A stretch of DNA of 63,915 bases, the filler included, from Bigelowiella natans CCMP2755 (taxonomy: Eukaryota; Protista; Cercozoa), in NCBI GenBank assembly GCA_000320545.1. It is 6 parts of 6 records of this genome, joined end to end, with 100 filler letters (N's around TTAATTAATTAA, not from the genome) between each part and the next. Parts side by side here need not be neighbours in the genome. Positions count along the whole stretch, not along the records: positions 1 to 14,888 come from ADNK01001351.1; 5 more parts are not named here. One strand, given 5' to 3'. The notes under the pieces are model-generated. The model saw nothing but the letters and a program-made list of their open reading frames with translations, was not told the DNA's origin and ran no database searches. This document shows positions 4,277 to 14,824 of this stretch, in pieces; positions within the stretch are counted from its first letter, which is position 1, and each line of letters begins with the position of its first letter. The position numbers and the translations under genes are program-made.

Positions 4277-6802
4277 TCATCCACTCATTTCATACCCCAT
4301 TGCCTTCCACTGACTCGACGAACGTGGACATCTCCATTCCTCTTCAACGTCGCAGCAGTGGCCTGTGAGAGCTTCCTCCACAGTGTCCCTCATCACCAGC
4401 CGAATGACTTGGACGACTTGGTCCTGACCCTGTCTGTGGACGCGGCCGATTGCCTGAGTTTCCACCACTGCCCTCTCCTCCGGAGAACCGGCAGGTTGGT
4501 CGAGGAGAATCACATGTGTTGCGACGATCAAGTCCAAACCCGAGGCCGTGTTGTCTAGCGAGAGAAGCATTACACGGACGCACTCCGCGTCATCCTTGAA
4601 GCGCCTCACGGACTTGTTCCTCATTTTCACATTTCCTTTCAACGGAACGAACCGCAGCTCGATCTGCTCGAGGGCGAGAGACACACAAGCGAACTGCCTC
4701 GGGTACTGGGTGAAGGTGATGACCCTTGCCTGGGGATCTCGCAACACCTGCTGCAGAACATCGAGGAGGCAGCAGATCTTCGAGCCAAAGTGCTTCCAAC
4801 GCCAATGCGGCCGGGTCGGTTCTAACTGCTCGAAACGACGGCAGATGCTCCGCTCAGCCTGTAAGCGCTTGCGCGCCTTCACGTGTGCGAAGGATTCTTC
4901 ATGCTCCGAGAGCGGCTTACGCGCATCCGTGATTTCCCTTTGCAGCGTTGAGCATCGAAGTTTTAGACCGTTTTTCCTGTGGAGATGACCCTTCAGTTTT
5001 TGAAGCGCGTCGCTCCTCTCTGCGAAGGTGCGTCCAGAGGTGGATTTCTTGCGCTGCTCTGAGATCTTCTTTTCTATCGCGGCGAGTTCTTGCTTCGCCA
5101 CTTTGAGTTTGCGCCGTAGCTTTTTCGACAGTCTCCGGATTGTTTCCACGAGGTTCCACTTCACACGGTACAGGTCCCCACGCCGCCTTGAGTGCAGAGC
5201 TTTGTCCAAGACTGCAGCGTTGTTGATTCGCGGGAGGATTTCGTCCCCAATGTAGTTATTCACAAAAGGATGTGCGCAGAGGCGTAGCAGCTGGCTACGG
5301 CAGTTATCATAGGCGCCGCCCCTTGCAATGCTTTCACAGTGTCTGTAAATCCAGGCCTCGATTGGGTGCATGGTAACAAAAATGACCTTCTCTCGCCTCG
5401 GCGGAAGGCTCCAGGCCGTGTCTTTCAGCGTGAATCTACAATAAAAGCTCCTCATTATGGACCCCTCTAGATAGCGTCCCAAAGGCGAATGCAGCACGCT
5501 ATTTGGGAGAATTCGTGTAGCGGATGCTGCCTGCTTCTCTTCCCAAAGGTGGATGCGGTGATCGCTCATCTCGTTCTTGAAGATTTCGGACTTGAAGAGA
5601 TACCGCATGGCCCCTCGGGGAGCGAAGAAGTTATCGGGGAACGGAGTTGCGCTCAGAACCAGCCTGAAAGCAGAGCGTATTTCGAGCAGGTTGCAAAAGG
5701 AATACGCGCGACGCTCTGCTATAGACTTCAAGGAGAACATCTCATGGAACTCATCTACCACGACCCGTTTCCAAAAAAATGCGCCCAGGGGCGGCGTCCT
5801 GTTCTTCTTCAGACCTTGGAGCATTCTGCTATTAACGCACTGAAAAGCCATGGGATCTCTCATAATTTCCAACGCGAGACTATCGAGACCGTCCAGCCTG
5901 GAGCTTCTCTCGCTCTGAAGAAGCTGCACCGAGGCAACGACAACGTCGCAGGTCGGAAACTTCATAAAGTGCCGCTGGAGATCTCGCCGGGATGTCACGC
6001 ATAGCGCCCGGAGCTTCGCAAACGTAGCCGGCCGCATGTGGAGCTCAAACTGGGCTCTCCACTGCTCCACCACGTGCGACGGGCACACGATCAAAGTCGC
6101 AGTCGTCTTTATTCTTCTAGAGGATGGATGGATTTTGAACGATCTAACCTTCGGCACTCCTCTGCCAAGGCTGCGGCCCTCCAGACGCACTATATGAGAC
6201 TCCCCTGAGGGGCAGCGACTGATGCCGCTCACGCGCATCTCACGAAAGCTGTGGATTTGAGAGTCGAGGAGTATGTGTCCGATTGCAGTGAGAGACTTAC
6301 CCAGGCCAACATCGTTCGCCACTAAACAACCATGAGGCTTGAAGGCCCAGGGCTGAATCTCATCATCGAGCAAAAACCGCTCATTTGGCCAATCAACTGC
6401 CAAAGGCGAGTTTCGGAAGATGGGAGGCTTGAACACCGTCGCTGGGATTTTATATTCGCATTCGCTTGTTACAAGCCGCTCCATGCGCCGAATGAACAGT
6501 ATCGTTTCTTGCTGGTACCCGTGCAGCTTCGTCCGGAAGATTTCATCCAAAGCGCTGCCGTCCAACGTTTCCCTGCCCCCCCGCCCACTTGGTTTTACGC
6601 TACGTAAGTACTTCCTCGCAAGGGGCTCTTTGATACTTGGCGAGGATGCCTGGTGAAGAAGATGATAAATGGTGACGAGGGGTGGCGGTGAATGATAGTC
6701 ATCAGCCCATGCTGCTGCTGCTTGAAAGCGCTGCTTTTGGATGCAGGCGGGGAAGAAGGGAAGGGGGGGGGGTTTTACAATGATTACTTGTACAAAATTC
6801 AA
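4277..6802 (-). CDS. SNF2-family ATPase/helicase, RAD5/RAD16-like; large terminal exon, with probable upstream exons at about 6884-7380
   Basis: Motifs: GCLVANDVGLGKS (I), TLIVCPSHVVEQW (Ia), WKRVVVDEFH (II), LSATP (III), GSKI..L, VMLLSLDNTASGLDL (V), ETQAIGRVHRQGQ (VI). The ORF start is probably intronic. Confidence 0.9.
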   Translation of the reverse strand: MNFVQVIIVKPPPLPFFPACIQKQRFQAAAAWADDYHSPPPLVTIYHLLHQASSPSIKEPLARKYLRSVKPSGRGGRETLDGSALDEIFRTKLHGYQQETILFIRRMERLVTSECEYKIPATVFKPPIFRNSPLAVDWPNERFLLDDEIQPWAFKPHGCLVANDVGLGKSLTAIGHILLDSQIHSFREMRVSGISRCPSGESHIVRLEGRSLGRGVPKVRSFKIHPSSRRIKTTATLIVCPSHVVEQWRAQFELHMRPATFAKLRALCVTSRRDLQRHFMKFPTCDVVVASVQLLQSERSSRLDGLDSLALEIMRDPMAFQCVNSRMLQGLKKNRTPPLGAFFWKRVVVDEFHEMFSLKSIAERRAYSFCNLLEIRSAFRLVLSATPFPDNFFAPRGAMRYLFKSEIFKNEMSDHRIHLWEEKQAASATRILPNSVLHSPLGRYLEGSIMRSFYCRFTLKDTAWSLPPRREKVIFVTMHPIEAWIYRHCESIARGGAYDNCRSQLLRLCAHPFVNNYIGDEILPRINNAAVLDKALHSRRRGDLYRVKWNLVETIRRLSKKLRRKLKVAKQELAAIEKKISEQRKKSTSGRTFAERSDALQKLKGHLHRKNGLKLRCSTLQREITDARKPLSEHEESFAHVKARKRLQAERSICRRFEQLEPTRPHWRWKHFGSKICCLLDVLQQVLRDPQARVITFTQYPRQFACVSLALEQIELRFVPLKGNVKMRNKSVRRFKDDAECVRVMLLSLDNTASGLDLIVATHVILLDQPAGSPEERAVVETQAIGRVHRQGQDQVVQVIRLVMRDTVEEALTGHCCDVEEEWRCPRSSSQWKAMGYEMSG

Positions 6803-7795
6803 TAGAGCTCTATTCTCCTTCGTTGTGAGCGTCCTCCTGATGTGTGTTATTTTTGCGCATTCGTTCAGACCCCCAAACTAATCTCACACAGGCTCGTCCA
6901 ATGAGAGTCTCATTTGATACCTATGGTTGACCAGATGTCTCTCCACGATGTGCAACGACATCCTAGATCGCCCGAAGTATGGAGCGGAAGGAACATAATC
7001 AAGGATTATGCTCGCGACGCTTCCGCTGAGTCCAGAGGCGCAGCATATTCTGTCTGCAGCAACATCAACAAGAGGCATGACTCCCACCTTCATCACCTGT
7101 TTATCGAGGACACCTGAAACGTCACGCATTCACTCAGTCCCCGTTACATTAACGTTTTAAGATGACACGAAATGCAACCTTCGAGGCCCCCGTCATATAT
7201 GCTTTTCGGTATGTAGGCGTTGTTAACCAGGTGGCGAACTGTGCGTATATCGCTGCTCACTTCAAAGCTTGCTAATTCGATGAGGCGGTCCCCCGTCTGG
7301 TTGGAACTCGAGGATTCCTCTTTCATAGGTAGTTTTCTCCTTTTCCCTACTCTTCGTCTTTTAGAGCATGTTTGTGACAACCCGCACAGTGGCGTTTCCC
7401 GGTCTCCTTTCCCCGGTGCCTCGAGGGCGCTAATAATTGGAGCACAAAAACGTGAAGCTTCCTGTAGCCTCCTCCCAGGGAGGGATGAATTTTCTGATAA
7501 CCATCGCTCACCGTTTCTGCATCGTCATGCCTTTTCTAGCTGAAAGAAACCAGGGGCGCGCCCCAACCGAGCATCGTCCTCTTCACGTGCCGGCTTCCCT
7601 CTTCAGGACGACAAGGAACGGCCTGCATTTCCGAGGCTCTCCGGAGAACCTCGAGGTGCACACCTTCGGACACTCCGGACATTTAGGTAATCCCCTGAAT
7701 TTGTTATTGCGCGACAACATTTTTTACATTGTCGCACTAGGGTGGGGGAAAACTCGGACCAGCATACACCCGACCACCTTTGCTCGGATGCTCTG

Positions 7796-10700
7796 ATGGG
7801 AGGAGCTCTGATGGGAGGAAGCAACATATCCAAAGCAGCCGAATATGGAGATTGGCCCAGGGTACAGCGGATGTTGGACAGGCGTGCAGACGTCAATCAA
7901 GCTGAAACAGGTGTTGCACTTGCGCGCGTGTGGGGGTTTGTTTCCATTCTCACAGACGGTGTCATCGTTGAAGTTGCAGCATCACGATCTCCGAGAGTGA
8001 GCTAGTGAGATGGGGATAGCAATTGCTGTTGTTTCCAGCGAGGGAAATGCTATTCTGTTAGAATGGAAGGAATCGGGATGCATCATTTCTTCATTTTTGT
8101 TGCAGGATCAGAAAAAAAATTCTCGATTGACATTTTCTCAATTCCATCTGTGCCCGCAAATTCTCTGATTGTTCCATTTTTTTTTCCGCGTTGTTGTTGG
8201 AATCTGTGTTACCAAAGGTCGTAGTCCGTTGCATTATGCATGTCGAGAGCGTCGCTTGGACATGGTGGAGATGCTTTTGGAGAAGAAGGCCAACATCAAT
8301 GCCGCCGATAAGCACGGTATAGTGTCATGTTGTGAATTGTGAGCAGAGCTCTTGGTGATTGGTTGTTATGGTCCATGTTGTTGCTGTAGATGTTGTAGCA
8401 TTTTGGGATTATTTCTTTGATACTATTGATTTAGAGAAAGAGCAAGATAGAGTGAGAGAAAGGAAAATAATGAGTGAAACAGACGGAAAAAGAAAAACAG
8501 AGAGAGGAGGAGAGCGGTGATTGGTGTAGTTTGACAGCGTAGGAGCTGTGGCGGGGGATGTTTCGGGAGAGATAGGATTGTCTTGTTCATTTCATTGTTT
8601 TTCATTGATTTTGTTGATTGTTCTCAGTTTCGGCTGCATGCGTATACGTTTTGATTGTTCACTTTTTTGTTTGCGTTATTATTGTAACCTGTGTGTGTGG
8701 GAATGTTGGACTTCACATGATACTAAAGGTTGTACTCCGTTGTTCTCGGTGTGTAAACATGTTTATGGCCCTCACGACCAATCGGAGGTGCTGTTGAGAA
8801 GAATAATGTGGTGAATTGTGAGCAAAGCTGTTGGTGCTTAATTGTTAAGGTCCATGTTATTGTTGTAGCACATGAAATTAGTGAATACGCTAATAAAGGG
8901 CAAGGCCGACATCGAGGCCACCGATCCATATGGTATCCTGTCATGTTGTGAATTGTGAACAGAGCTGTTGGTGCTTGGTTGTCATTGTCTGTGCTGTCGC
9001 TGTATTTGTTGTAGCATCATGCGATCATTTCTGTTGGACTGCATACAATACCAAAGGTTGGACTCCGTTGACCTTATCGATTGACAAAGGTACCACCTTA
9101 GTGGTGGGTTTGCTATTGGAGAAGAAGGCCAACATCAATGCCGCCGATAAGCACGGTATCGTGTCATGATTGAATTGTGAGTAGAGCTTTTGGTGATTGG
9201 TTGTTATGGTCTATGTTGTCGCTGTAGATGTTGTAGCATTTTGAGATTATTTCTCTTTTGTCACTAATGAATCATAGAAAGAGCAAGGCAGAGTGAGAGA
9301 AAGAAAAATAATGAGTGAAAGAGACGGAAAAGAAAAACAGAGAGAGGAGGAGAGCGGTGATTGGTGTAGTTTGATAGCGTAGGAGCTGTGGCGGGGGATG
9401 TTCGGGAGAGATACGATTGTCTTGTTCATTTCATTGTTTTTCATTGATTTTGTTGATTGTTCTCAGTTTCGGCTGCATGCGTATACGTTTTGATTGTTCA
9501 CTTTTTTGTTTGCGTTATTATTGTGACCTGTGTGTGGGAATGTTGGAACTAAAGGTATGACTGCATTGACGCATGCGTGTGAGTCTTGGGATAAACCAAT
9601 AGATAGGGCGTGGGCGTCTTCGGAGACCCGCCCTAATTTTGTGCGGTTGCTATTGGAGAAGAAGGCCAACACCGAGGCCGCCGCTGACGAGGGTATCATG
9701 GCATGTCATGAATTATGAGCAGAAGTAGTGGTGACCGGCTATACCCATATATGCTCTGATTGTTCATTTTTTTGGTTTGCGTTACCATTGGAACCTGGTG
9801 TGGGAATGTTGGACTGTGAATGTACCACAGGTAGGACTCCGTTGCACTATCTTTGTCGAGGCGGTCACTTGGACGGGGTGAAGATGCTTTTGGAGAAGAA
9901 GGCCTACATCAATGCCGCCGATATCTACGGTATAGTGTCATGTTGTGAATTGTGAGCAGAGCTCTTGGTGATTGGTTGTCATGGTCTATGTTGTCGCTGA
10001 AGTTGTATAGAACTGTCATGTTCATTTCATTGTTTTTTATTGTTTTTGCTGATTGTTCTCAGTTTCGGCTGCACGCGTACACGTTTTGACCGTTCAATTT
10101 TTTTGTTTGCGTTATTATTGGAATCTGTGTGTGGGAATGTGGAACTGCACATTTACTAAAGGTCAAACTTCGTTGCACTTGGCGTGTCGAGAGGGTCGCT
10201 TGGACATGGTGGAGATACTTTTGGAGAAGAAGGCCAACATCAATGCCTTCGATAAGCCTGGTATCGTATCATATTATGAATTGTGAGCAGAGCCTTTGGT
10301 GATTAGTTGTCATGGTCTATGTTGTCTCTGTAGTTGTTGTAGCATTTTGCGATTATTTCTGTTTTGTTACTGTAGAAAACAAGGAGAGAAAGAGATGGAA
10401 AAAGAAGAACAGAGATAGGACGAGAGGGGTGATTGGTGTAGTGGTAGCATAGGGGCTGTGGCGGGGGGTGTAACGGGGGAGTTAGGATTGTCTTGTTCGT
10501 TTCATTGTTTTTCATTGGTTTTGTTGATTTGTTCTCAGTTTCGGCTACACACGTAACGTTTTGATTGTTCATTTTTTTGTTTGCGTTATTGTTGCAACCT
10601 TTGTGTGTGGGAATGTGGAATTGAACATGTACCAAAGGTGACACTCCGTTGCACCCGGCGTGTCGAGAAGGCCGCTTGGATGTTGTGGAGATGCTTTTGG

Positions 10701-11110
10701 AGAAGAAGGCCAACGCCAATGCTCCCGGTGGCTATGGTATCGTTTCATGTTATGAATGTGGCTATGCTGATGTGTGACTTTGTAGAGATCCATTGGGTTC
10801 ATTGCTGTTGTTGTTTTTTTGATATCGTGTCTCAACTGTTATCATCGTGCTTCTTAAAACTTTTCCAGGGAGGACTCCGCTGGATTGGGCGAAACGCAGA
10901 CGCCACACAAAAATCGTTGAAATTTTGGAAGGTGATGAAATTCGAAAAATCCGAAATTTCAGCACCAGCAGCAGCAATCCACAGCAGCATCAGCAGCATC
11001 ATCAACAGAGAGAAAGAAAATGGGTTGGGGAAGAAAGAACAATTAGCTTGATATTTCAAGTGCAGCCGCGTTTGTTTCTTTTTCTTTCTTCTACGTCAGC
11101 CATCGCTTAA
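7796..11110 (+). CDS. Ankyrin-repeat protein, one repeat per exon
   Basis: Exons 7796-7910, 8218-8316, 8729-8787+8869-8932, 9057-9155, 9555-9692, 9831-9929, 10162-10260, 10638-10736, 10869-(11110). All are GT..AG bounded and splice in frame; each encodes GxTPLH...LLEKKAxINAxD. The 3' end is uncertain. Confidence 0.9.
8150..10760 (+). repeat. Tandemly duplicated intron+exon units of the ankyrin gene
   Basis: Intron blocks such as GTATxGTGTCATGTTGTGAATTGTGAGCAGAGC and TTTTGATTGTTCAxTTTTTTGTTTGCGTTATT...GTGTGGGAATGT recur in most introns. Introns 8317-8728 and 9156-9554 are near-identical. Confidence 0.9.
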
Positions 11111-12305
11111 TTTCTGTCATTTTCTTTTCTCCCCTTTTTTTCCAATGGACACTTTCCTCTGTTACCATCACTCGTTTCTAATGTTTTGTTCTGCTACTCA
11201 TCCTTTATTCCAAACCCCATGGCACTTGTTTACAAATGATCATGTTGTCAAATCATCAAAGGGTACAAACCCTCATTGAAGTCAGAACCAGTCCACACAC
11301 TCGCGCGACAGGTTTCTCAAATAGTAGTTGTGGTAGCTTGTAGATGAAAGTCGGAGCATGCACGGTGAGGAGTAACAAAGTAGCGTTCTCCATCGCCTCC
11401 CTGCCCCACCCTTTGAACGGAGGGGGAGACCAATCGCCTTTCGATTGACATGGCTTTGTGTGGAAGAAACTGGTCTAGAGGATGTGTTGTGGGGCAAAAT
11501 TTACATTTGGCCTGAGAGATGCTATGGGATGGAGTCACACCTGCATGCAATTTGAAACATGATTTTTTGTGTTTCTTCGAAAAAGGGAGGAAGCCCCCGG
11601 CAAACCAAAAAACCAGAAAATCCCGAAGTGCAAACCCAAAAATCAGAAAATCTCGATGTGGAAGTCATCAATCCAGATTGACATTCTGGACATTAGGGGC
11701 AGAAAACTCAAATCACCACCTCGACAACACTCGCTTTCATGCATCATCAGCGAAAGAACACTTCAAAAGTGCACAATGTCATGGGACCGGCCAATTCTGG
11801 AATTGACACGTGGGTGCACACGCACACATTTCATCTGCATGGCTTGATGCATTGTGGACATGCAACACCATGTGCATGCCATGGGGATGCTCATCATGGA
11901 CATGCAATGCCACACATGTGCTGCATGTGATGTCACTGTGTCCATCATGTGCGGATCACTTGGTGAGACCTGTGCATGCTAGCATGGCCAACTCATGGAG
12001 AACGTGCACGTGCAATGTCTGTTTTGCACGTGCAAAATGCACGTGTCGTCTATTGGATTCACGCGTGCATGCACGCATGTCAGTGCTGATGTTTTCAATT
12101 GCATGCGCAAGTTTGCTGAAGTTTGGTAATGTGAAAATGAATGAAATGGTCATGCCGCCAGGCAGTTGAGGCTCAGGTTCTGTTGGCCACCGTGTGTTGT
12201 TGGCCGACCACACCACACTTGCATGGAAATTCATGCACACGTGTGCAAGCGGTGGCATGAGCACGTCCACATCCACGTGAAAATGCGCATGGAAAAACAA
12301 TCAGA

Positions 12306-12352
<47 letters not shown>

Positions 12353-13396: not shown

Positions 13397-13480
13397 TGCG
13401 AGCTGTGGGATTTGAACCCACGAAGCATCACGCACTCCGGCTTGAACGAAGCCCAATTGACCAGGCCATGGGAAGCTCGC
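13397..13480 (-). tRNA. trnL-CAA: tRNA-Leu(CAA), type II, possibly degenerate
   Basis: Minus strand GCGAGCT TC CCA TGGCCTGGTCAAT TGG G CTTCG TT-CAA-GC CGGAG TGCGTGATGCTTC GTGGG TTCAAAT CCCAC AGCTCGC A. Perfect 7-bp acceptor stem, canonical T-arm, long variable arm, discriminator A. The D-arm is atypical. Confidence 0.8.
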
Positions 13481-13492
13481 TGACAACGTGTT

Positions 13493-13564
13493 CGCCCCCA
13501 CCCAGATTCGAACTGGGATTGACGAGTTAACAGCTCGCCGTCCTGACCATTGGACGATGGGAAC
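13493..13564 (-). tRNA. trnN-GTT: tRNA-Asn(GTT)
   Basis: Minus strand GTTCCCA TC GTCC AATGGTCA GGAC G GCGAG CT-GTT-AA CTCGT CAAT CCCAG TTCGAAT CTGGG TGGGGGC G. 72-nt cloverleaf with G73 discriminator. Confidence 0.88.
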
Positions 13565-14762
13565 CTGTCATTTGTTGCTTCTCTTGCTAAGAACATGCCT
13601 CCGGCGCACCCCCGATTGCGAAGAAAGCTTTCCGTGGAAATTGCTCGGAACTCGGAGCCACAGCGCCCAATGTCGAGCACATCCGAGCATTCCGAGAAGT
13701 TTCCGGTAAATCTCAGATGAATTGTCGGTTCTCCTGGAAAAAGGGCTCATTTTGTTAAGATGTGAGTCCGATGTTTTCTGACTATGTTATCAGCGTCGGT
13801 GGTAACTTCATCAACAATCAGAAGAGCAACTTGATGTCAAACAACAACGGGGTTCAATTCCCCTCCGATGCTTTTTTTGCCTAGAATCAGGCGATGACGG
13901 CCGTTTTTGGATTTCCTGTTCCGAATGGCCTTGTCGCCTGGGGAAAACCTAGCTTCGACAAATGGACGTTTTTCGGTGGATATGTCTCGCATGCTCGGCG
14001 CCGGGGCTCGACTCGACTCCGCGGGTTCCCATTGCTTTTTTCATGTCATCAATTTTTGGTTTATGATTAAATGGATACTTTCTACGATATTACCGGTGTA
14101 ATTATTCTCCTAAACGAACACACTGATCGTCTTGAGCCGGATTGCGAGAATTTCACGAACGGGCACGGCCCACACCGGTACACGATCCACTTCGGGCAGC
14201 ATTCGAAGAGGCCTACGGCAGGTGCAGCAGTTGCCCCCCTAAACCGGTAGGAAGGGAGTGGGGATTTAGCGGGAAGGCGGATCGTGTAGAGGAAGGAAAA
14301 TCGTGTGGAGGTGGCGGCGAGGAGCTTTTATCTAGAGAGCACGTGTCTGGAGATGGAGGGGAAAGCGCGACGGAGAGACTCTATTGCCAGCGTTGCCAGA
14401 AAGGAGTCTTCATGCTCCGAGCGTTGTTATAGGACTTCAGCTGCTGCAGTATGGATACTTGTTTCGATATACCTTTGCTGTGCAGATACGGCAGCAAGGA
14501 GTGCGACGCATAGGTCAAAGTTCCGAAGAAAAAGTGTTTTATGCATGCAAATACGTTCATAAATTTATTTTGTGTCTCACCTTTAATTGCTAACAGCGGG
14601 GGAAGGCCCTTGTCCACAGTCTTTGATGTGAACCGCCGGTGGAAAACTAACAATGGATTTCCTGAAGGGAGAATGCGTGTTTTAAGGTTAGGGCGAAGCT
14701 CTTTTTCGTAACGGCCGCGACGTTAATTTATGCTGTCTTGCTCTCCCCCCCCCCCTCAAATA

Positions 14763-14824
<62 letters not shown>

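Follow-up and report, generated by a model that had tools for sequence, protein, structure and literature searches.

Does a gene that carries each of its ankyrin repeats on a separate exon generate protein diversity, and does it do so within the cell or over evolution? We addressed this question at a locus of the cercozoan Bigelowiella natans CCMP2755, in a window of 63,915 nucleotides (the whole stretch of DNA analysed, filler included), in which six parts of the genome assembly are joined end to end. A first-pass annotation had described an array of cassettes with one ankyrin repeat per phase-1/phase-1 exon, separated by introns copied from a single unit, and had suggested that it served as a generator of diversity through shuffling or alternative splicing.

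A single transcribed gene of twelve exons

The locus is a single transcribed ankyrin-repeat gene of 12 exons on the + strand (7796/7811-11681, Table 1). Exon coordinates were derived by script and then checked against the joints of RNA contigs from runs X1 and X3, which belong to two studies. All 11 introns were recovered as GT..AG joints, with no mismatches between the contigs and the window. Translation likely starts at the second ATG (7811), which aligns with the start of a paralogue described below. The spliced coding sequence of 1080 nt encodes 354-359 amino acids without internal stops: an N-cap exon is followed by seven internal cassettes, then by a C-cap half-repeat and a brief charged tail. 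The main mRNA includes every cassette in genomic order, and the gene is expressed at a similar depth in both studies. The RNA joints bear out the cassette structure that had been proposed, with five exons of 99 nt, one of 138 nt, and a cassette split in two (59 + 64 nt). All outer cassette boundaries are in phase 1, within a Gly codon preceding a TPL motif, and with this symmetric design cassettes can indeed be swapped without a frameshift. The array had been thought to end near 10940; the transcripts instead place the C-cap in exon 9 and add exons 10 and 11 with the stop codon.

Table 1 Exons and introns of the ankyrin-repeat gene (all + strand; positions along the window)
Feature	Position	Length (nt)	Phase	Description	Match or support
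Exon 1	7796-7910	115	ends in 1	Start codon and N-terminal capping half-repeat	Weak Ank_5 match; joint 7910/8218 (X1, X3, one raw read)
Intron 1	7911-8217	307		Repeated-unit homology limited to last ~75-85 nt	Repeat family D7
Exon 2	8218-8316	99	1/1	Ankyrin cassette	Pfam Ank 39 bits, positions 3-33; RNA joints
Intron 2	8317-8728	412		Full-length intron unit	95% identity to intron 4
Exon 3a	8729-8787	59	1 to 0	5' part of broken cassette; new donor within former cassette	Joints 8316/8729 and 8787/8869 (RNA contigs)
Intron 3a	8788-8868	81		Frameshifted remnant of cassette 3' part plus first 63 nt of unit	D5 repeat copy, 8806-8868
Exon 3b	8869-8932	64	0 to 1	3' part of cassette	RNA joints
Intron 3b	8933-9056	124		Unit copy, shortened	
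Exon 4	9057-9155	99		Mosaic cassette: divergent 5' half, 3' 40 nt as in exon 2	Joint 8932/9057
Intron 4	9156-9554	399		Full-length unit	95% identity to intron 2
Exon 5	9555-9692	138	1/1	Long ankyrin cassette, 13-residue insertion between helices	RNA joints
Intron 5	9693-9830	138		Unit copy, shortened and more diverged	
Exon 6	9831-9929	99	1/1	Ankyrin cassette	Pfam Ank 33 bits; RNA joints
Intron 6	9930-10161	232		Unit copy without GA-rich core	
Exon 7	10162-10260	99	1/1	Ankyrin cassette, 86% identity to exon 2	Pfam Ank 36.8 bits; RNA joints
Intron 7	10261-10637	377		Full-length unit	79% identity to intron 2, gaps included
Exon 8	10638-10736	99	1/1	Ankyrin cassette	Pfam Ank 29 bits; RNA joints
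Intron 8	10737-10868	132		Unit-like in 5' part only	
Exon 9	10869-10931	63	1/1	C-terminal capping half-repeat	Joints 10736/10869 and 10931/11262; Ank positions 3-21
Intron 9	10932-11261	330		Unrelated to unit	Conserved with paralogue
Exon 10	11262-11311	50	1 to 0	Tail exon	RNA joints
Intron 10	11312-11585	274		Unrelated to unit	
Exon 11, coding part	11586-11681			Low-complexity K/E/Q-rich tail; TGA 11679-11681	Joint 11311/11586

Searched singly against Pfam Ank (PF00023, cut-off 21.1 bits), exons 2, 6, 7, and 8 scored above the cut-off, and exon 4, at 20.7 bits, fell slightly under it; every 99-nt exon aligned to positions 3-33 of the model. Exons 3b and 9 gave partial matches. Exon 5, searched alone, had no match because of its insertion. 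Together, exons 3a and 3b encode a 41-residue hybrid repeat (123 nt in total with the distal donor), interrupted by a phase-0 intron; a shorter exon 3a of 32 nt (donor 8761) was ruled out, as the RNA splices at donor 8788. The order of the repeat stack, from N-cap-like exon through seven cassettes to C-cap half-repeat, is read from the splice chain, and a capped tandem stack is the predicted arrangement.

Towards the 3' end, intron 9 is partly retained (depth 16.9 versus 47.9 for the spliced form in X1), which would yield an alternative C-terminus ending at 11110. We rejected this read-through of exon 9 as the main C-terminus, since the spliced form is about three times deeper, and regard it as a minor retained-intron form. 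Intron 10 is also partly retained (12 versus 44 in X3), and read depth increases across 11666-11800, with the 3' UTR extending past 11800. The exon-by-exon Pfam search found no signalling domain in the gene (no NB-ARC, ROC-COR, or other) and no match for the 48-residue C-terminal tail. The product is most likely a cytosolic protein-protein adaptor, a putative assignment. A SNF2-like gene, for which a single relative was matched at 25% identity, neighbours the locus.

Intron copies and concerted evolution

The proposal that the introns are copies of one unit holds for each of introns 2 to 7 and, in part, for intron 1 (its 3' end) and intron 8 (its 5' end), but not for introns 9 and 10. In its full form, as in intron 2, the unit comprises a 5' block of 63 nt, a core rich in GA, and a 3' block rich in T, and the inter-cassette introns descend from one such unit. 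A genome-wide search for sister loci with the intron unit returned one close paralogue, on contig C3314, the matches being confined to that locus and the present one. Because of this restriction to two loci, we rejected a transposon origin of the unit. An intron-hosted small RNA was likewise rejected for now: searched against Rfam, the introns returned nothing at E <= 1, and the conserved 3' block of the unit folded no better as RNA than shuffled sequences (z = +1.2).

The paralogue follows the same plan, with six cassettes versus seven here, and has the same split in a cassette; its open frame is 927 nt long. All exon length differences between the two genes are multiples of 3. Both cassettes and introns cluster by locus. 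Cassettes are 74-86% identical within the gene in the window and 56-68% identical to those of the paralogue, and long introns reach 95% identity within the former (introns 2 and 4) and 98% within the latter (introns 1 and 4), versus 76-79% between loci. Cassettes and long introns are homogenised within each gene, exons 2 and 4 end in 40 identical nt, and recent intragenic conversion or duplication is evident. As judged from these comparisons, cassette turnover over evolution is real, and the gene grew by the copying of exon-plus-intron units. Exons are less conserved than introns between the paralogues when aligned columns are counted (68.9% versus 78.1%); we did not use this as proof of positive selection, as the difference is gone with gap columns counted.

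Several steps could together account for this history. The homologous introns would promote unequal crossing-over and gene conversion, by which exon-plus-intron units may be duplicated, deleted, or overwritten, and the phase-1 symmetry would keep the frame open after every exchange of units. The broken cassette of exons 3a and 3b would have been rescued through new splice sites. Selection, in turn, would maintain both the ankyrin framework and an intact reading frame, and may favour change at the target-binding surface.

A genome-wide cassette family and its predicted binding surface

Scanning the genome for 99-nt phase-1 ankyrin exons with two independent patterns yielded 283 hits (control 0) and 294 hits (control 15). 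The ankyrin gene is a member of a family with about 300 such cassettes in the genome. The recurrence of this exon form some 290 times, against 0 to 15 control hits, together with the transcript-verified boundaries, excludes chance. Elsewhere in the genome, the arrays are regular, their period ranging from about 179 to 650 nt; those inspected lie on contigs C233, C324, C746, C869, C1330, C1421, C1798, and C3665. The large arrays inspected also have N-cap and C-cap exons and are ankyrin-only. Reverse-strand cassettes were found neither in the window nor in the other scanned loci, and the window held no orphan cassettes. Within introns, no inactivated or reverse-strand cassettes were seen in the 10 loci inspected, the frameshifted remnant in intron 3a being the sole trace of one. 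A search of metagenomes for other strains returned only unrelated ankyrin matches at 38-48% identity, and a literature search found no paper linking ankyrin to 99-bp exons, nor one that connects it in protists to the tandem duplication of exons.

The layout had been likened to that of designed ankyrin repeat proteins (DARPins), and the N-cap and C-cap exons and the pattern of variation sustain this likeness. DARPins, too, consist of an N-cap, n internal repeats of 33 residues, and a C-cap, with a constant framework and a variable surface of beta-turn and first helix. Their randomised positions 2, 3, 5, 13, 14, and 33 correspond to exon codons 31, 32, 1, 9, 10, and 29 in the mapping applied here, after the design attributed to Binz and colleagues in 2003. 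At these six a priori surface codons pN was 0.535, compared with 0.215 at the other 26 codons and a pS of 0.286, an enrichment reached by just 9 of 20000 codon sets drawn at random. Surface pN exceeded pS in all eight cassette sets, comparisons that are not mutually independent. These values support the view that replacement changes are concentrated on the expected binding surface, at the six DARPin-randomised positions. Overall, dN/dS was about 1, both within the gene and between paralogues; a value near 1 is also expected under relaxed constraint, and neither the length nor the number of the cassettes suffices for a formal site test. DARPins come from artificial libraries; the variants here are separate germline exons and genes. 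In one study, DARPin repeats are described as removable with the fold kept (PMC5701241).

Origin of the diversity and relation to known systems

We regard it as probable that the locus is a modular binder gene of the germline, ankyrin-only, whose cassettes turn over in evolution by duplication and conversion of units; a within-cell generator is not demonstrated. The diversity seen is germline, between paralogues, and evolutionary. Of the proposed diversity generator, evolutionary turnover is the part that stood, through the seven versus six cassettes and the conversion; no unambiguous skipped or reordered isoform was found for the rest. In that other form of the proposal, the spliceosome would skip varied cassettes, so that one gene yields ankyrin proteins differing in repeat number or combination, which we consider distinctly unlikely. 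The symmetric phases do make the skipping of any cassette frame-neutral, the partial retention of introns 9 and 10 indicates that splicing is not fully uniform, and one source reports that ROCO genes of brown algae, in which each LRR has its own exon, are alternatively spliced (PMC11378527). Contig depth over exons 3a, 3b, and 4 is also about 30% lower in both runs (32.3 versus 43.5-47.9 and 30.9 versus 44.2-46), a dip that a constitutive model leaves unexplained but that could also stem from biased coverage or from an allele with a deletion. No unambiguous skipping or reordering joint was present, however, in the contigs of X1 or X3, and the remaining cassette junctions each had a single partner; the raw reads placed on the locus numbered 53, too small a sample to decide. 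One joint in X3, from 8316 to 9555, was rejected as evidence of skipping: its short side of 27 nt falls entirely within the 40 nt that exons 2 and 4 have in common and is ambiguous between them, and X1 places the same type of contig as 9155 to 9555. These shared end bases make a joint of exon 2 to exon 5 invisible to 31-mer contigs, and since De Bruijn contigs lose rare isoforms and break at this repeat, minor skipping isoforms could escape.

Rearrangement of the DNA itself, with cassettes shuffled or copied into the expressed gene in each cell to give an adaptive-like repertoire resembling that of lamprey VLRs, is extremely improbable. Its sole support is the raw material, namely many homologous cassettes and introns and the signs of past conversion. 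Against it, RNA contigs from both studies match the assembled order with no differences, and the DNA-like contigs of X20 are colinear where they cover the locus, with two single-base differences (bulk contigs). Nor does the window contain an incomplete germline gene with flanking donor cassettes, or cassettes that are orphaned or on the opposite strand. One X20 contig has a loose end of 28 letters at 10789, absent from the genome and uninformative. We also weighed whether the array is a decaying relic, a by-product of tandem duplication that drifts neutrally, is transcribed incidentally, and has no selected function. A dN/dS of about 1 within the gene and between paralogues, and exons no better conserved than introns between them, would fit such a relic, but we hold it to be highly improbable. 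Both paralogues retain open frames and intact GT..AG sites at ~31-36% nucleotide divergence, while simulated drift left an open frame in none of 20000 runs once it reached the observed divergence (p = 0.31) and, with p set to 0.15, in 25 of 20000. The exon length differences in multiples of 3, the conserved framework codons beside variable surface codons, and the similar expression depth in two studies likewise speak against decay.

The germline, evolutionary reading can be set beside several known systems. That each ankyrin repeat has its own exon is in itself no novelty, given the precedent of vertebrate ANK1, ANK2, and ANK3, whose repeats in the membrane-binding domain, in findings attributed to Gallagher and colleagues in 1997, reportedly lie largely on single 99-bp exons, some on 198-bp exons. 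The introns of these vertebrate genes are long and mutually unrelated, their array of 24 repeats is ancient and fixed, and ZU5-UPA-death domains are attached; here, in contrast, the introns are still recognisably homologous and copy number is changing. Lamprey VLR cassette assembly and the mutually exclusive exons of insect Dscam1 generate diversity within the individual. With these the locus shares homologous cassettes that lie in tandem, are compatible in frame, and specify binding surfaces (predicted here), but it differs in the single cassette order in RNA, with no incomplete germline gene, adjoining donor banks, or docking or selector elements seen.

The first-pass annotation also compared the locus with the brown alga Ectocarpus, whose ROCO-LRR and NB-ARC-TPR genes carry one fixed-length repeat of symmetric phase per exon and vary in repeat number among recent duplicates; exon shuffling has been proposed for them, with positive selection at ligand-binding positions (Zambounis et al. 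2012, PMC3341825). The analogy extends to the fixed-length, symmetric repeat exons and to the change in repeat number between paralogues. It does not extend to domain architecture, as a ROC-COR, NB-ARC, or kinase domain is missing from the present protein, and the repeat is a 99-nt ankyrin rather than an LRR (72 nt) or TPR; apart from the intron 3a remnant, the 10 loci inspected also lack inactivated or reverse-strand cassettes in introns. Tetrahymena-type LRR exons are similar in being fixed-length, single-phase repeat exons in tandem arrays genome-wide, in the inferred clonal spread of one exon-intron unit by unequal crossing-over, and in a junction codon common to neighbouring exons. They differ in encoding LRRs on 90-nt, phase-2 exons instead of ankyrin repeats on 99-nt, phase-1 exons, and they number tens of thousands, compared with hundreds here, where no link to a retrotransposon emerged.

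Internal duplication is held to drive the growth of repeat proteins, yet its units seldom remain visible. The present locus clearly illustrates how exons are duplicated together with their introns and evolve in concert, owing to its recognisable intron copies, a broken cassette repaired through new splice sites, conversion tracts that can be resolved to within a single exon, and cassette numbers that differ between paralogues. A broader reading, which we put forward tentatively and as unlikely, is that the family forms a large, fast-evolving repertoire of ankyrin-only binders, built from about 300 interchangeable 99-nt phase-1 cassettes whose framework hardly varies while their target-binding positions are hypervariable. 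Such a repertoire would be the ankyrin counterpart of the LRR and TPR repertoires of brown algae and Tetrahymena, with a role in recognising variable ligands (viruses, bacteria, prey, or symbionts), to which skipping, for example from exon 2 to exon 5, could add isoforms. Some 300 cassettes of the same length and phase that vary at the binding surface would extend the idea of exon-cassette repertoires from LRR and TPR to ankyrin, and would offer a natural test bed for the diversification of binding specificities. Proof of cassette skipping, or of a function in recognition, would make the family a candidate for a non-canonical recognition system of a microbial eukaryote.

Exon plan and transcript support

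The ankyrin gene lies in eukaryotic DNA on contig C2386, and the genome searched was the 91.4-Mb assembly of 3736 contigs. After reading positions 7000–11500, we called candidate exon borders by script and aligned transcripts to positions 7200–11800. RNA-like contigs of runs X1 and X3, which come from different studies, carried GT..AG joints from each exon to the next, with no base differences from the window, and two of these joints also appeared in single raw RNA reads (run X21). Summing phases over the exons gave a frame of 1080 nt without internal stop. Every cassette (an exon coding one ankyrin repeat) from E2 to E9 has phase 1 at both ends, and an internal phase-0 intron splits the E3a/E3b pair. 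The joints thus confirm the one-repeat-per-exon, phase-1 design that the first-pass annotation had proposed. In a paralogue on contig C3314 the start lines up with the second ATG (7811), so 354 residues are more probable for the protein than 359.

Features of the window, the paralogue and example arrays (joint: GT..AG joint to the next exon in X1 and X3 contigs)
Feature	Position	Strand	Length or remark	Joint
E1	7796-7910	+	115 nt	7910|8218
E2	8218-8316	+	99 nt	8316|8729
E3a	8729-8787	+	59 nt	8787|8869
E3b	8869-8932	+	64 nt	8932|9057
E4	9057-9155	+	99 nt	9155|9555
E5	9555-9692	+	138 nt	9692|9831
E6	9831-9929	+	99 nt	9929|10162
E7	10162-10260	+	99 nt	10260|10638
E8	10638-10736	+	99 nt	10736|10869
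E9	10869-10931	+	63 nt	10931|11262
E10	11262-11311	+	50 nt	11311|11586
E11	11586-11681	+	96 nt, including stop TGA 11679-11681	
tRNA Leu(CAA)	13397-13480	-	12 nt from tRNA Asn(GTT)	
tRNA Asn(GTT)	13493-13564	-	12 nt from tRNA Leu(CAA)	
Paralogue gene	L011 4398-8048 = C3314:45397-49047	+	borders by homology only	
Example array L020	C1330:43793-47900			
Example array L018	C869:19216-21118			
Example array L021	C324:13295-14832			
Example array L022	C746			
Example array L013	C233			
Example array L014	C1421			
Example array L012	C3665			
Example array L015	C1798			

Scanned exon by exon against the Pfam Ank profile, the 99-nt exons E2, E6, E7 and E8 matched over profile positions 3–33 with 39, 33, 36.8 and 29 bits, and E4 reached 20.7 bits (cut-off 21.1). 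The exon border therefore falls, in every repeat, in the Gly codon directly before the TPL motif. E1 encodes a half repeat of capping type, E9 covers Ank positions 3–21, and the repeat of E5 holds a 13-residue insertion. The charged tail coded by E10 and E11 matched no family, and the exon-wise scan found no domain besides ankyrin in the protein. The immune-like role previously suggested is unsupported, and the protein has no signalling domain.

Several features of the neighbourhood were also recorded. On the minus strand, 4277–6802 is a single open frame of 841 codons with an SNF2-related domain and a helicase C-terminal domain; since its sole relative in a word search of 5.8 billion proteins is only 25% identical, its lineage is either highly divergent or thinly sampled. 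RNA contigs in the region 7200–7512, also on the minus strand, contain an 82-nt intron at 7430–7511 (CT..AC on the plus strand) that belongs to a neighbouring gene, whose end is some 280 nt upstream of the start codon of the ankyrin gene. Long (TA)n, (GA)n and (CA)n microsatellites lie at about 500–1500, 12300–12345 and 14760–14820.

Splicing and possible shuffling of cassettes in the window gene

The first-pass annotation saw in the array a candidate generator of diversity, by shuffling or alternative splicing. The X1 and X3 contigs gave one chain of joints, which leaves cassette-level alternative splicing in this gene unsupported. The sole skip-like joint, from 8316 to 9555, occurred in X3 only and is uninformative on skipping, because its 27-nt short side lies wholly within 40 nt common to E2 and E4; the X1 counterpart of this contig was placed as 9155 to 9555. 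Owing to the same 40 nt, 31-mer contigs are blind to an E2-to-E5 isoform, and the contig spanning E3a, E3b and E4 (8729–9155) has a depth (32.3 in X1, 30.9 in X3) about 30% below that of the other exon contigs (43.5–47.9 and 44.2–46), as is compatible with such a hidden isoform. A minor isoform skipping 222 nt in frame, an allele with a deletion, or biased coverage could each account for the dip. The raw-read run contributed only 53 reads, mostly from the 3′ UTR. Somatic shuffling of cassettes is likewise unsupported, since DNA-like contigs of run X20 are colinear with the window wherever the locus is covered.

Introns 9 (10932–11261) and 10 (11312–11585) were partly retained in RNA contigs, at depths of 16.9 and 12. 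If intron 9 were kept, the tail would give way to another C-terminus of 59 residues, ending at 11110; the beginning of this read-through frame has a similar counterpart in the paralogue. A low-depth X20 contig departs from the window at 10789, in intron 8, with 28 letters absent from the assembly; either a strain-specific insertion or chimerism of the contig could account for them.

The intron unit and remodelling after duplication

A repeat search showed introns 2, 3b, 4, 5, 6 and 7 each to be a copy, full-length or shortened, of a single unit, made up of a 63-nt 5′ block (7 copies), a GA-rich core (introns 2, 4 and 7) and a T-rich 3′ block. The earlier view that the introns are copies of one unit thus stands for these six, applies in part to intron 1 (common to the unit at the 3′ end only) and intron 8 (5′ end only), and fails for introns 9 and 10, which bear no relation to it. 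The unit had no match in Rfam, and its RNA stability is not unusual (z = +1.2). Over 8001–10500, the cassette array, GC skew is strongly positive (0.26–0.38) because the introns are G/T-rich on the coding strand.

A genome-wide search with this unit had been suggested as a way to count sister loci, and it found one: across the whole genome the unit matches only the window locus and C3314, which rules out a mobile element. The paralogue there has a 927-nt frame with no stop and GT..AG at all homology-inferred borders. It comprises an N-cap, cassettes of 99, 56+64, 99, 105, 102 and 105 nt, a 54-nt C-cap, and tail exons of 41 and 99 nt. Colinearity between the two genes holds at both ends and breaks down in the middle (seven internal cassettes in the window gene, six in the paralogue), and all exon length differences are multiples of three. 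Long introns are nearly identical within a gene (window introns 2 and 4, 95%; paralogue introns 1 and 4, 98% without gaps), whereas identity between the genes is 76–79%. E2, E6, E7 and E8 are 74–86% alike, against 56–68% to any paralogue cassette, and E2 and E4 share identical 3′ 40 nt with strongly different 5′ halves. We read the closer likeness within than between genes, the 40-nt identity and the lengths changing by multiples of three as traces of unequal exchange and gene conversion, which would have remodelled each gene after duplication.

The split cassette has a history of its own. E3a is the 5′ portion of a cassette whose 3′ portion, frameshifted and truncated, now lies within intron 3a, where the first 63 nt of the intron unit come immediately after it; E3b is the 3′ portion of another cassette and begins at a TTGTAG acceptor present inside the unit. 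Because the RNA takes the distal donor, at 8788, the hybrid repeat has 41 residues. The arrangement resembles the outcome of a deletion between two units, rescued through new splice sites. The split also occurs in the paralogue and, being common to both genes, predates their duplication.

A genome-wide cassette family and probable selection on it

When one cassette was used as a protein query and four other loci were then inspected, the same design (AG, 99-nt phase-1 exon, GT) appeared elsewhere in the genome. Genome-wide, a DNA pattern with Leu at codon 4 and K-A-N at codons 23–25 gave 283 matches against 0 in the reversed control, and one with T-P-L at codons 2–4 only gave 294 against 15, counts that depend on the chosen motifs and are lower bounds as to cassettes of other lengths. 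The matches form arrays spread over dozens of contigs, 24 of them represented in the first 100 matches listed, with periods of about 179, 412, 478 and 650 nt. On C1330, one array contains at least 21 cassettes spaced at 179 nt, the sum of a 99-nt exon and an 80-nt intron. Some adjoining cassettes in arrays are identical. The larger array genes have a cap-like exon first and a cap repeat last, and no domain besides ankyrin was found in them. Because most ankyrin repeats of this genome sit in long intronless open frames, the cassette form is a distinct ankyrin subfamily. Evolutionary shuffling, one part of what the first-pass annotation proposed, is supported and extends to a genome-wide family.

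That a single ankyrin repeat fills a 99-bp exon is not in itself new, since vertebrate ANK1-3 show this too. The nearest described systems are the Ectocarpus genes with 72-nt LRR and TPR exons, explained by duplication of exon-intron units (PMC3341825), and the 90-bp phase-2 LRR exon arrays of Tetrahymena, attributed to the same process (PMC6564038). In contrast to both, the repeat here is ankyrin, the phase 1 and the exon 99 nt, with no signalling domain, and the window case is without the reverse-strand or inactivated cassettes of Ectocarpus. Our literature search found no paper on 99-nt ankyrin exon arrays as a family.

dN/dS (Nei-Gojobori) was about 1 in comparisons among cassettes, and also when orthologous cassettes from the window gene and the paralogue were compared. 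This is not simple decay, because random substitution of the coding sequence up to the divergence observed left the frame open in 0 of 20,000 trials at p = 0.31 and 25 of 20,000 at p = 0.15, yet both frames are open and the window gene is expressed. Exon codons 1, 9, 10, 29, 31 and 32, which we take to be the positions randomised in DARPin design, were chosen in advance as surface. Replacement diversity was 0.535 at these six against 0.215 at the other 26 (synonymous diversity, 0.286), and 9 of 20,000 random six-codon sets reached 0.535, for short sequences whose pairs are not independent. Surface-codon enrichment recurred in all seven other arrays tested; the array framework is almost invariant, with replacement changes at the predicted binding surface. 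As an informal comparison of short sequences and non-independent pairs, this fits a conserved framework bearing a diversifying predicted binding surface.
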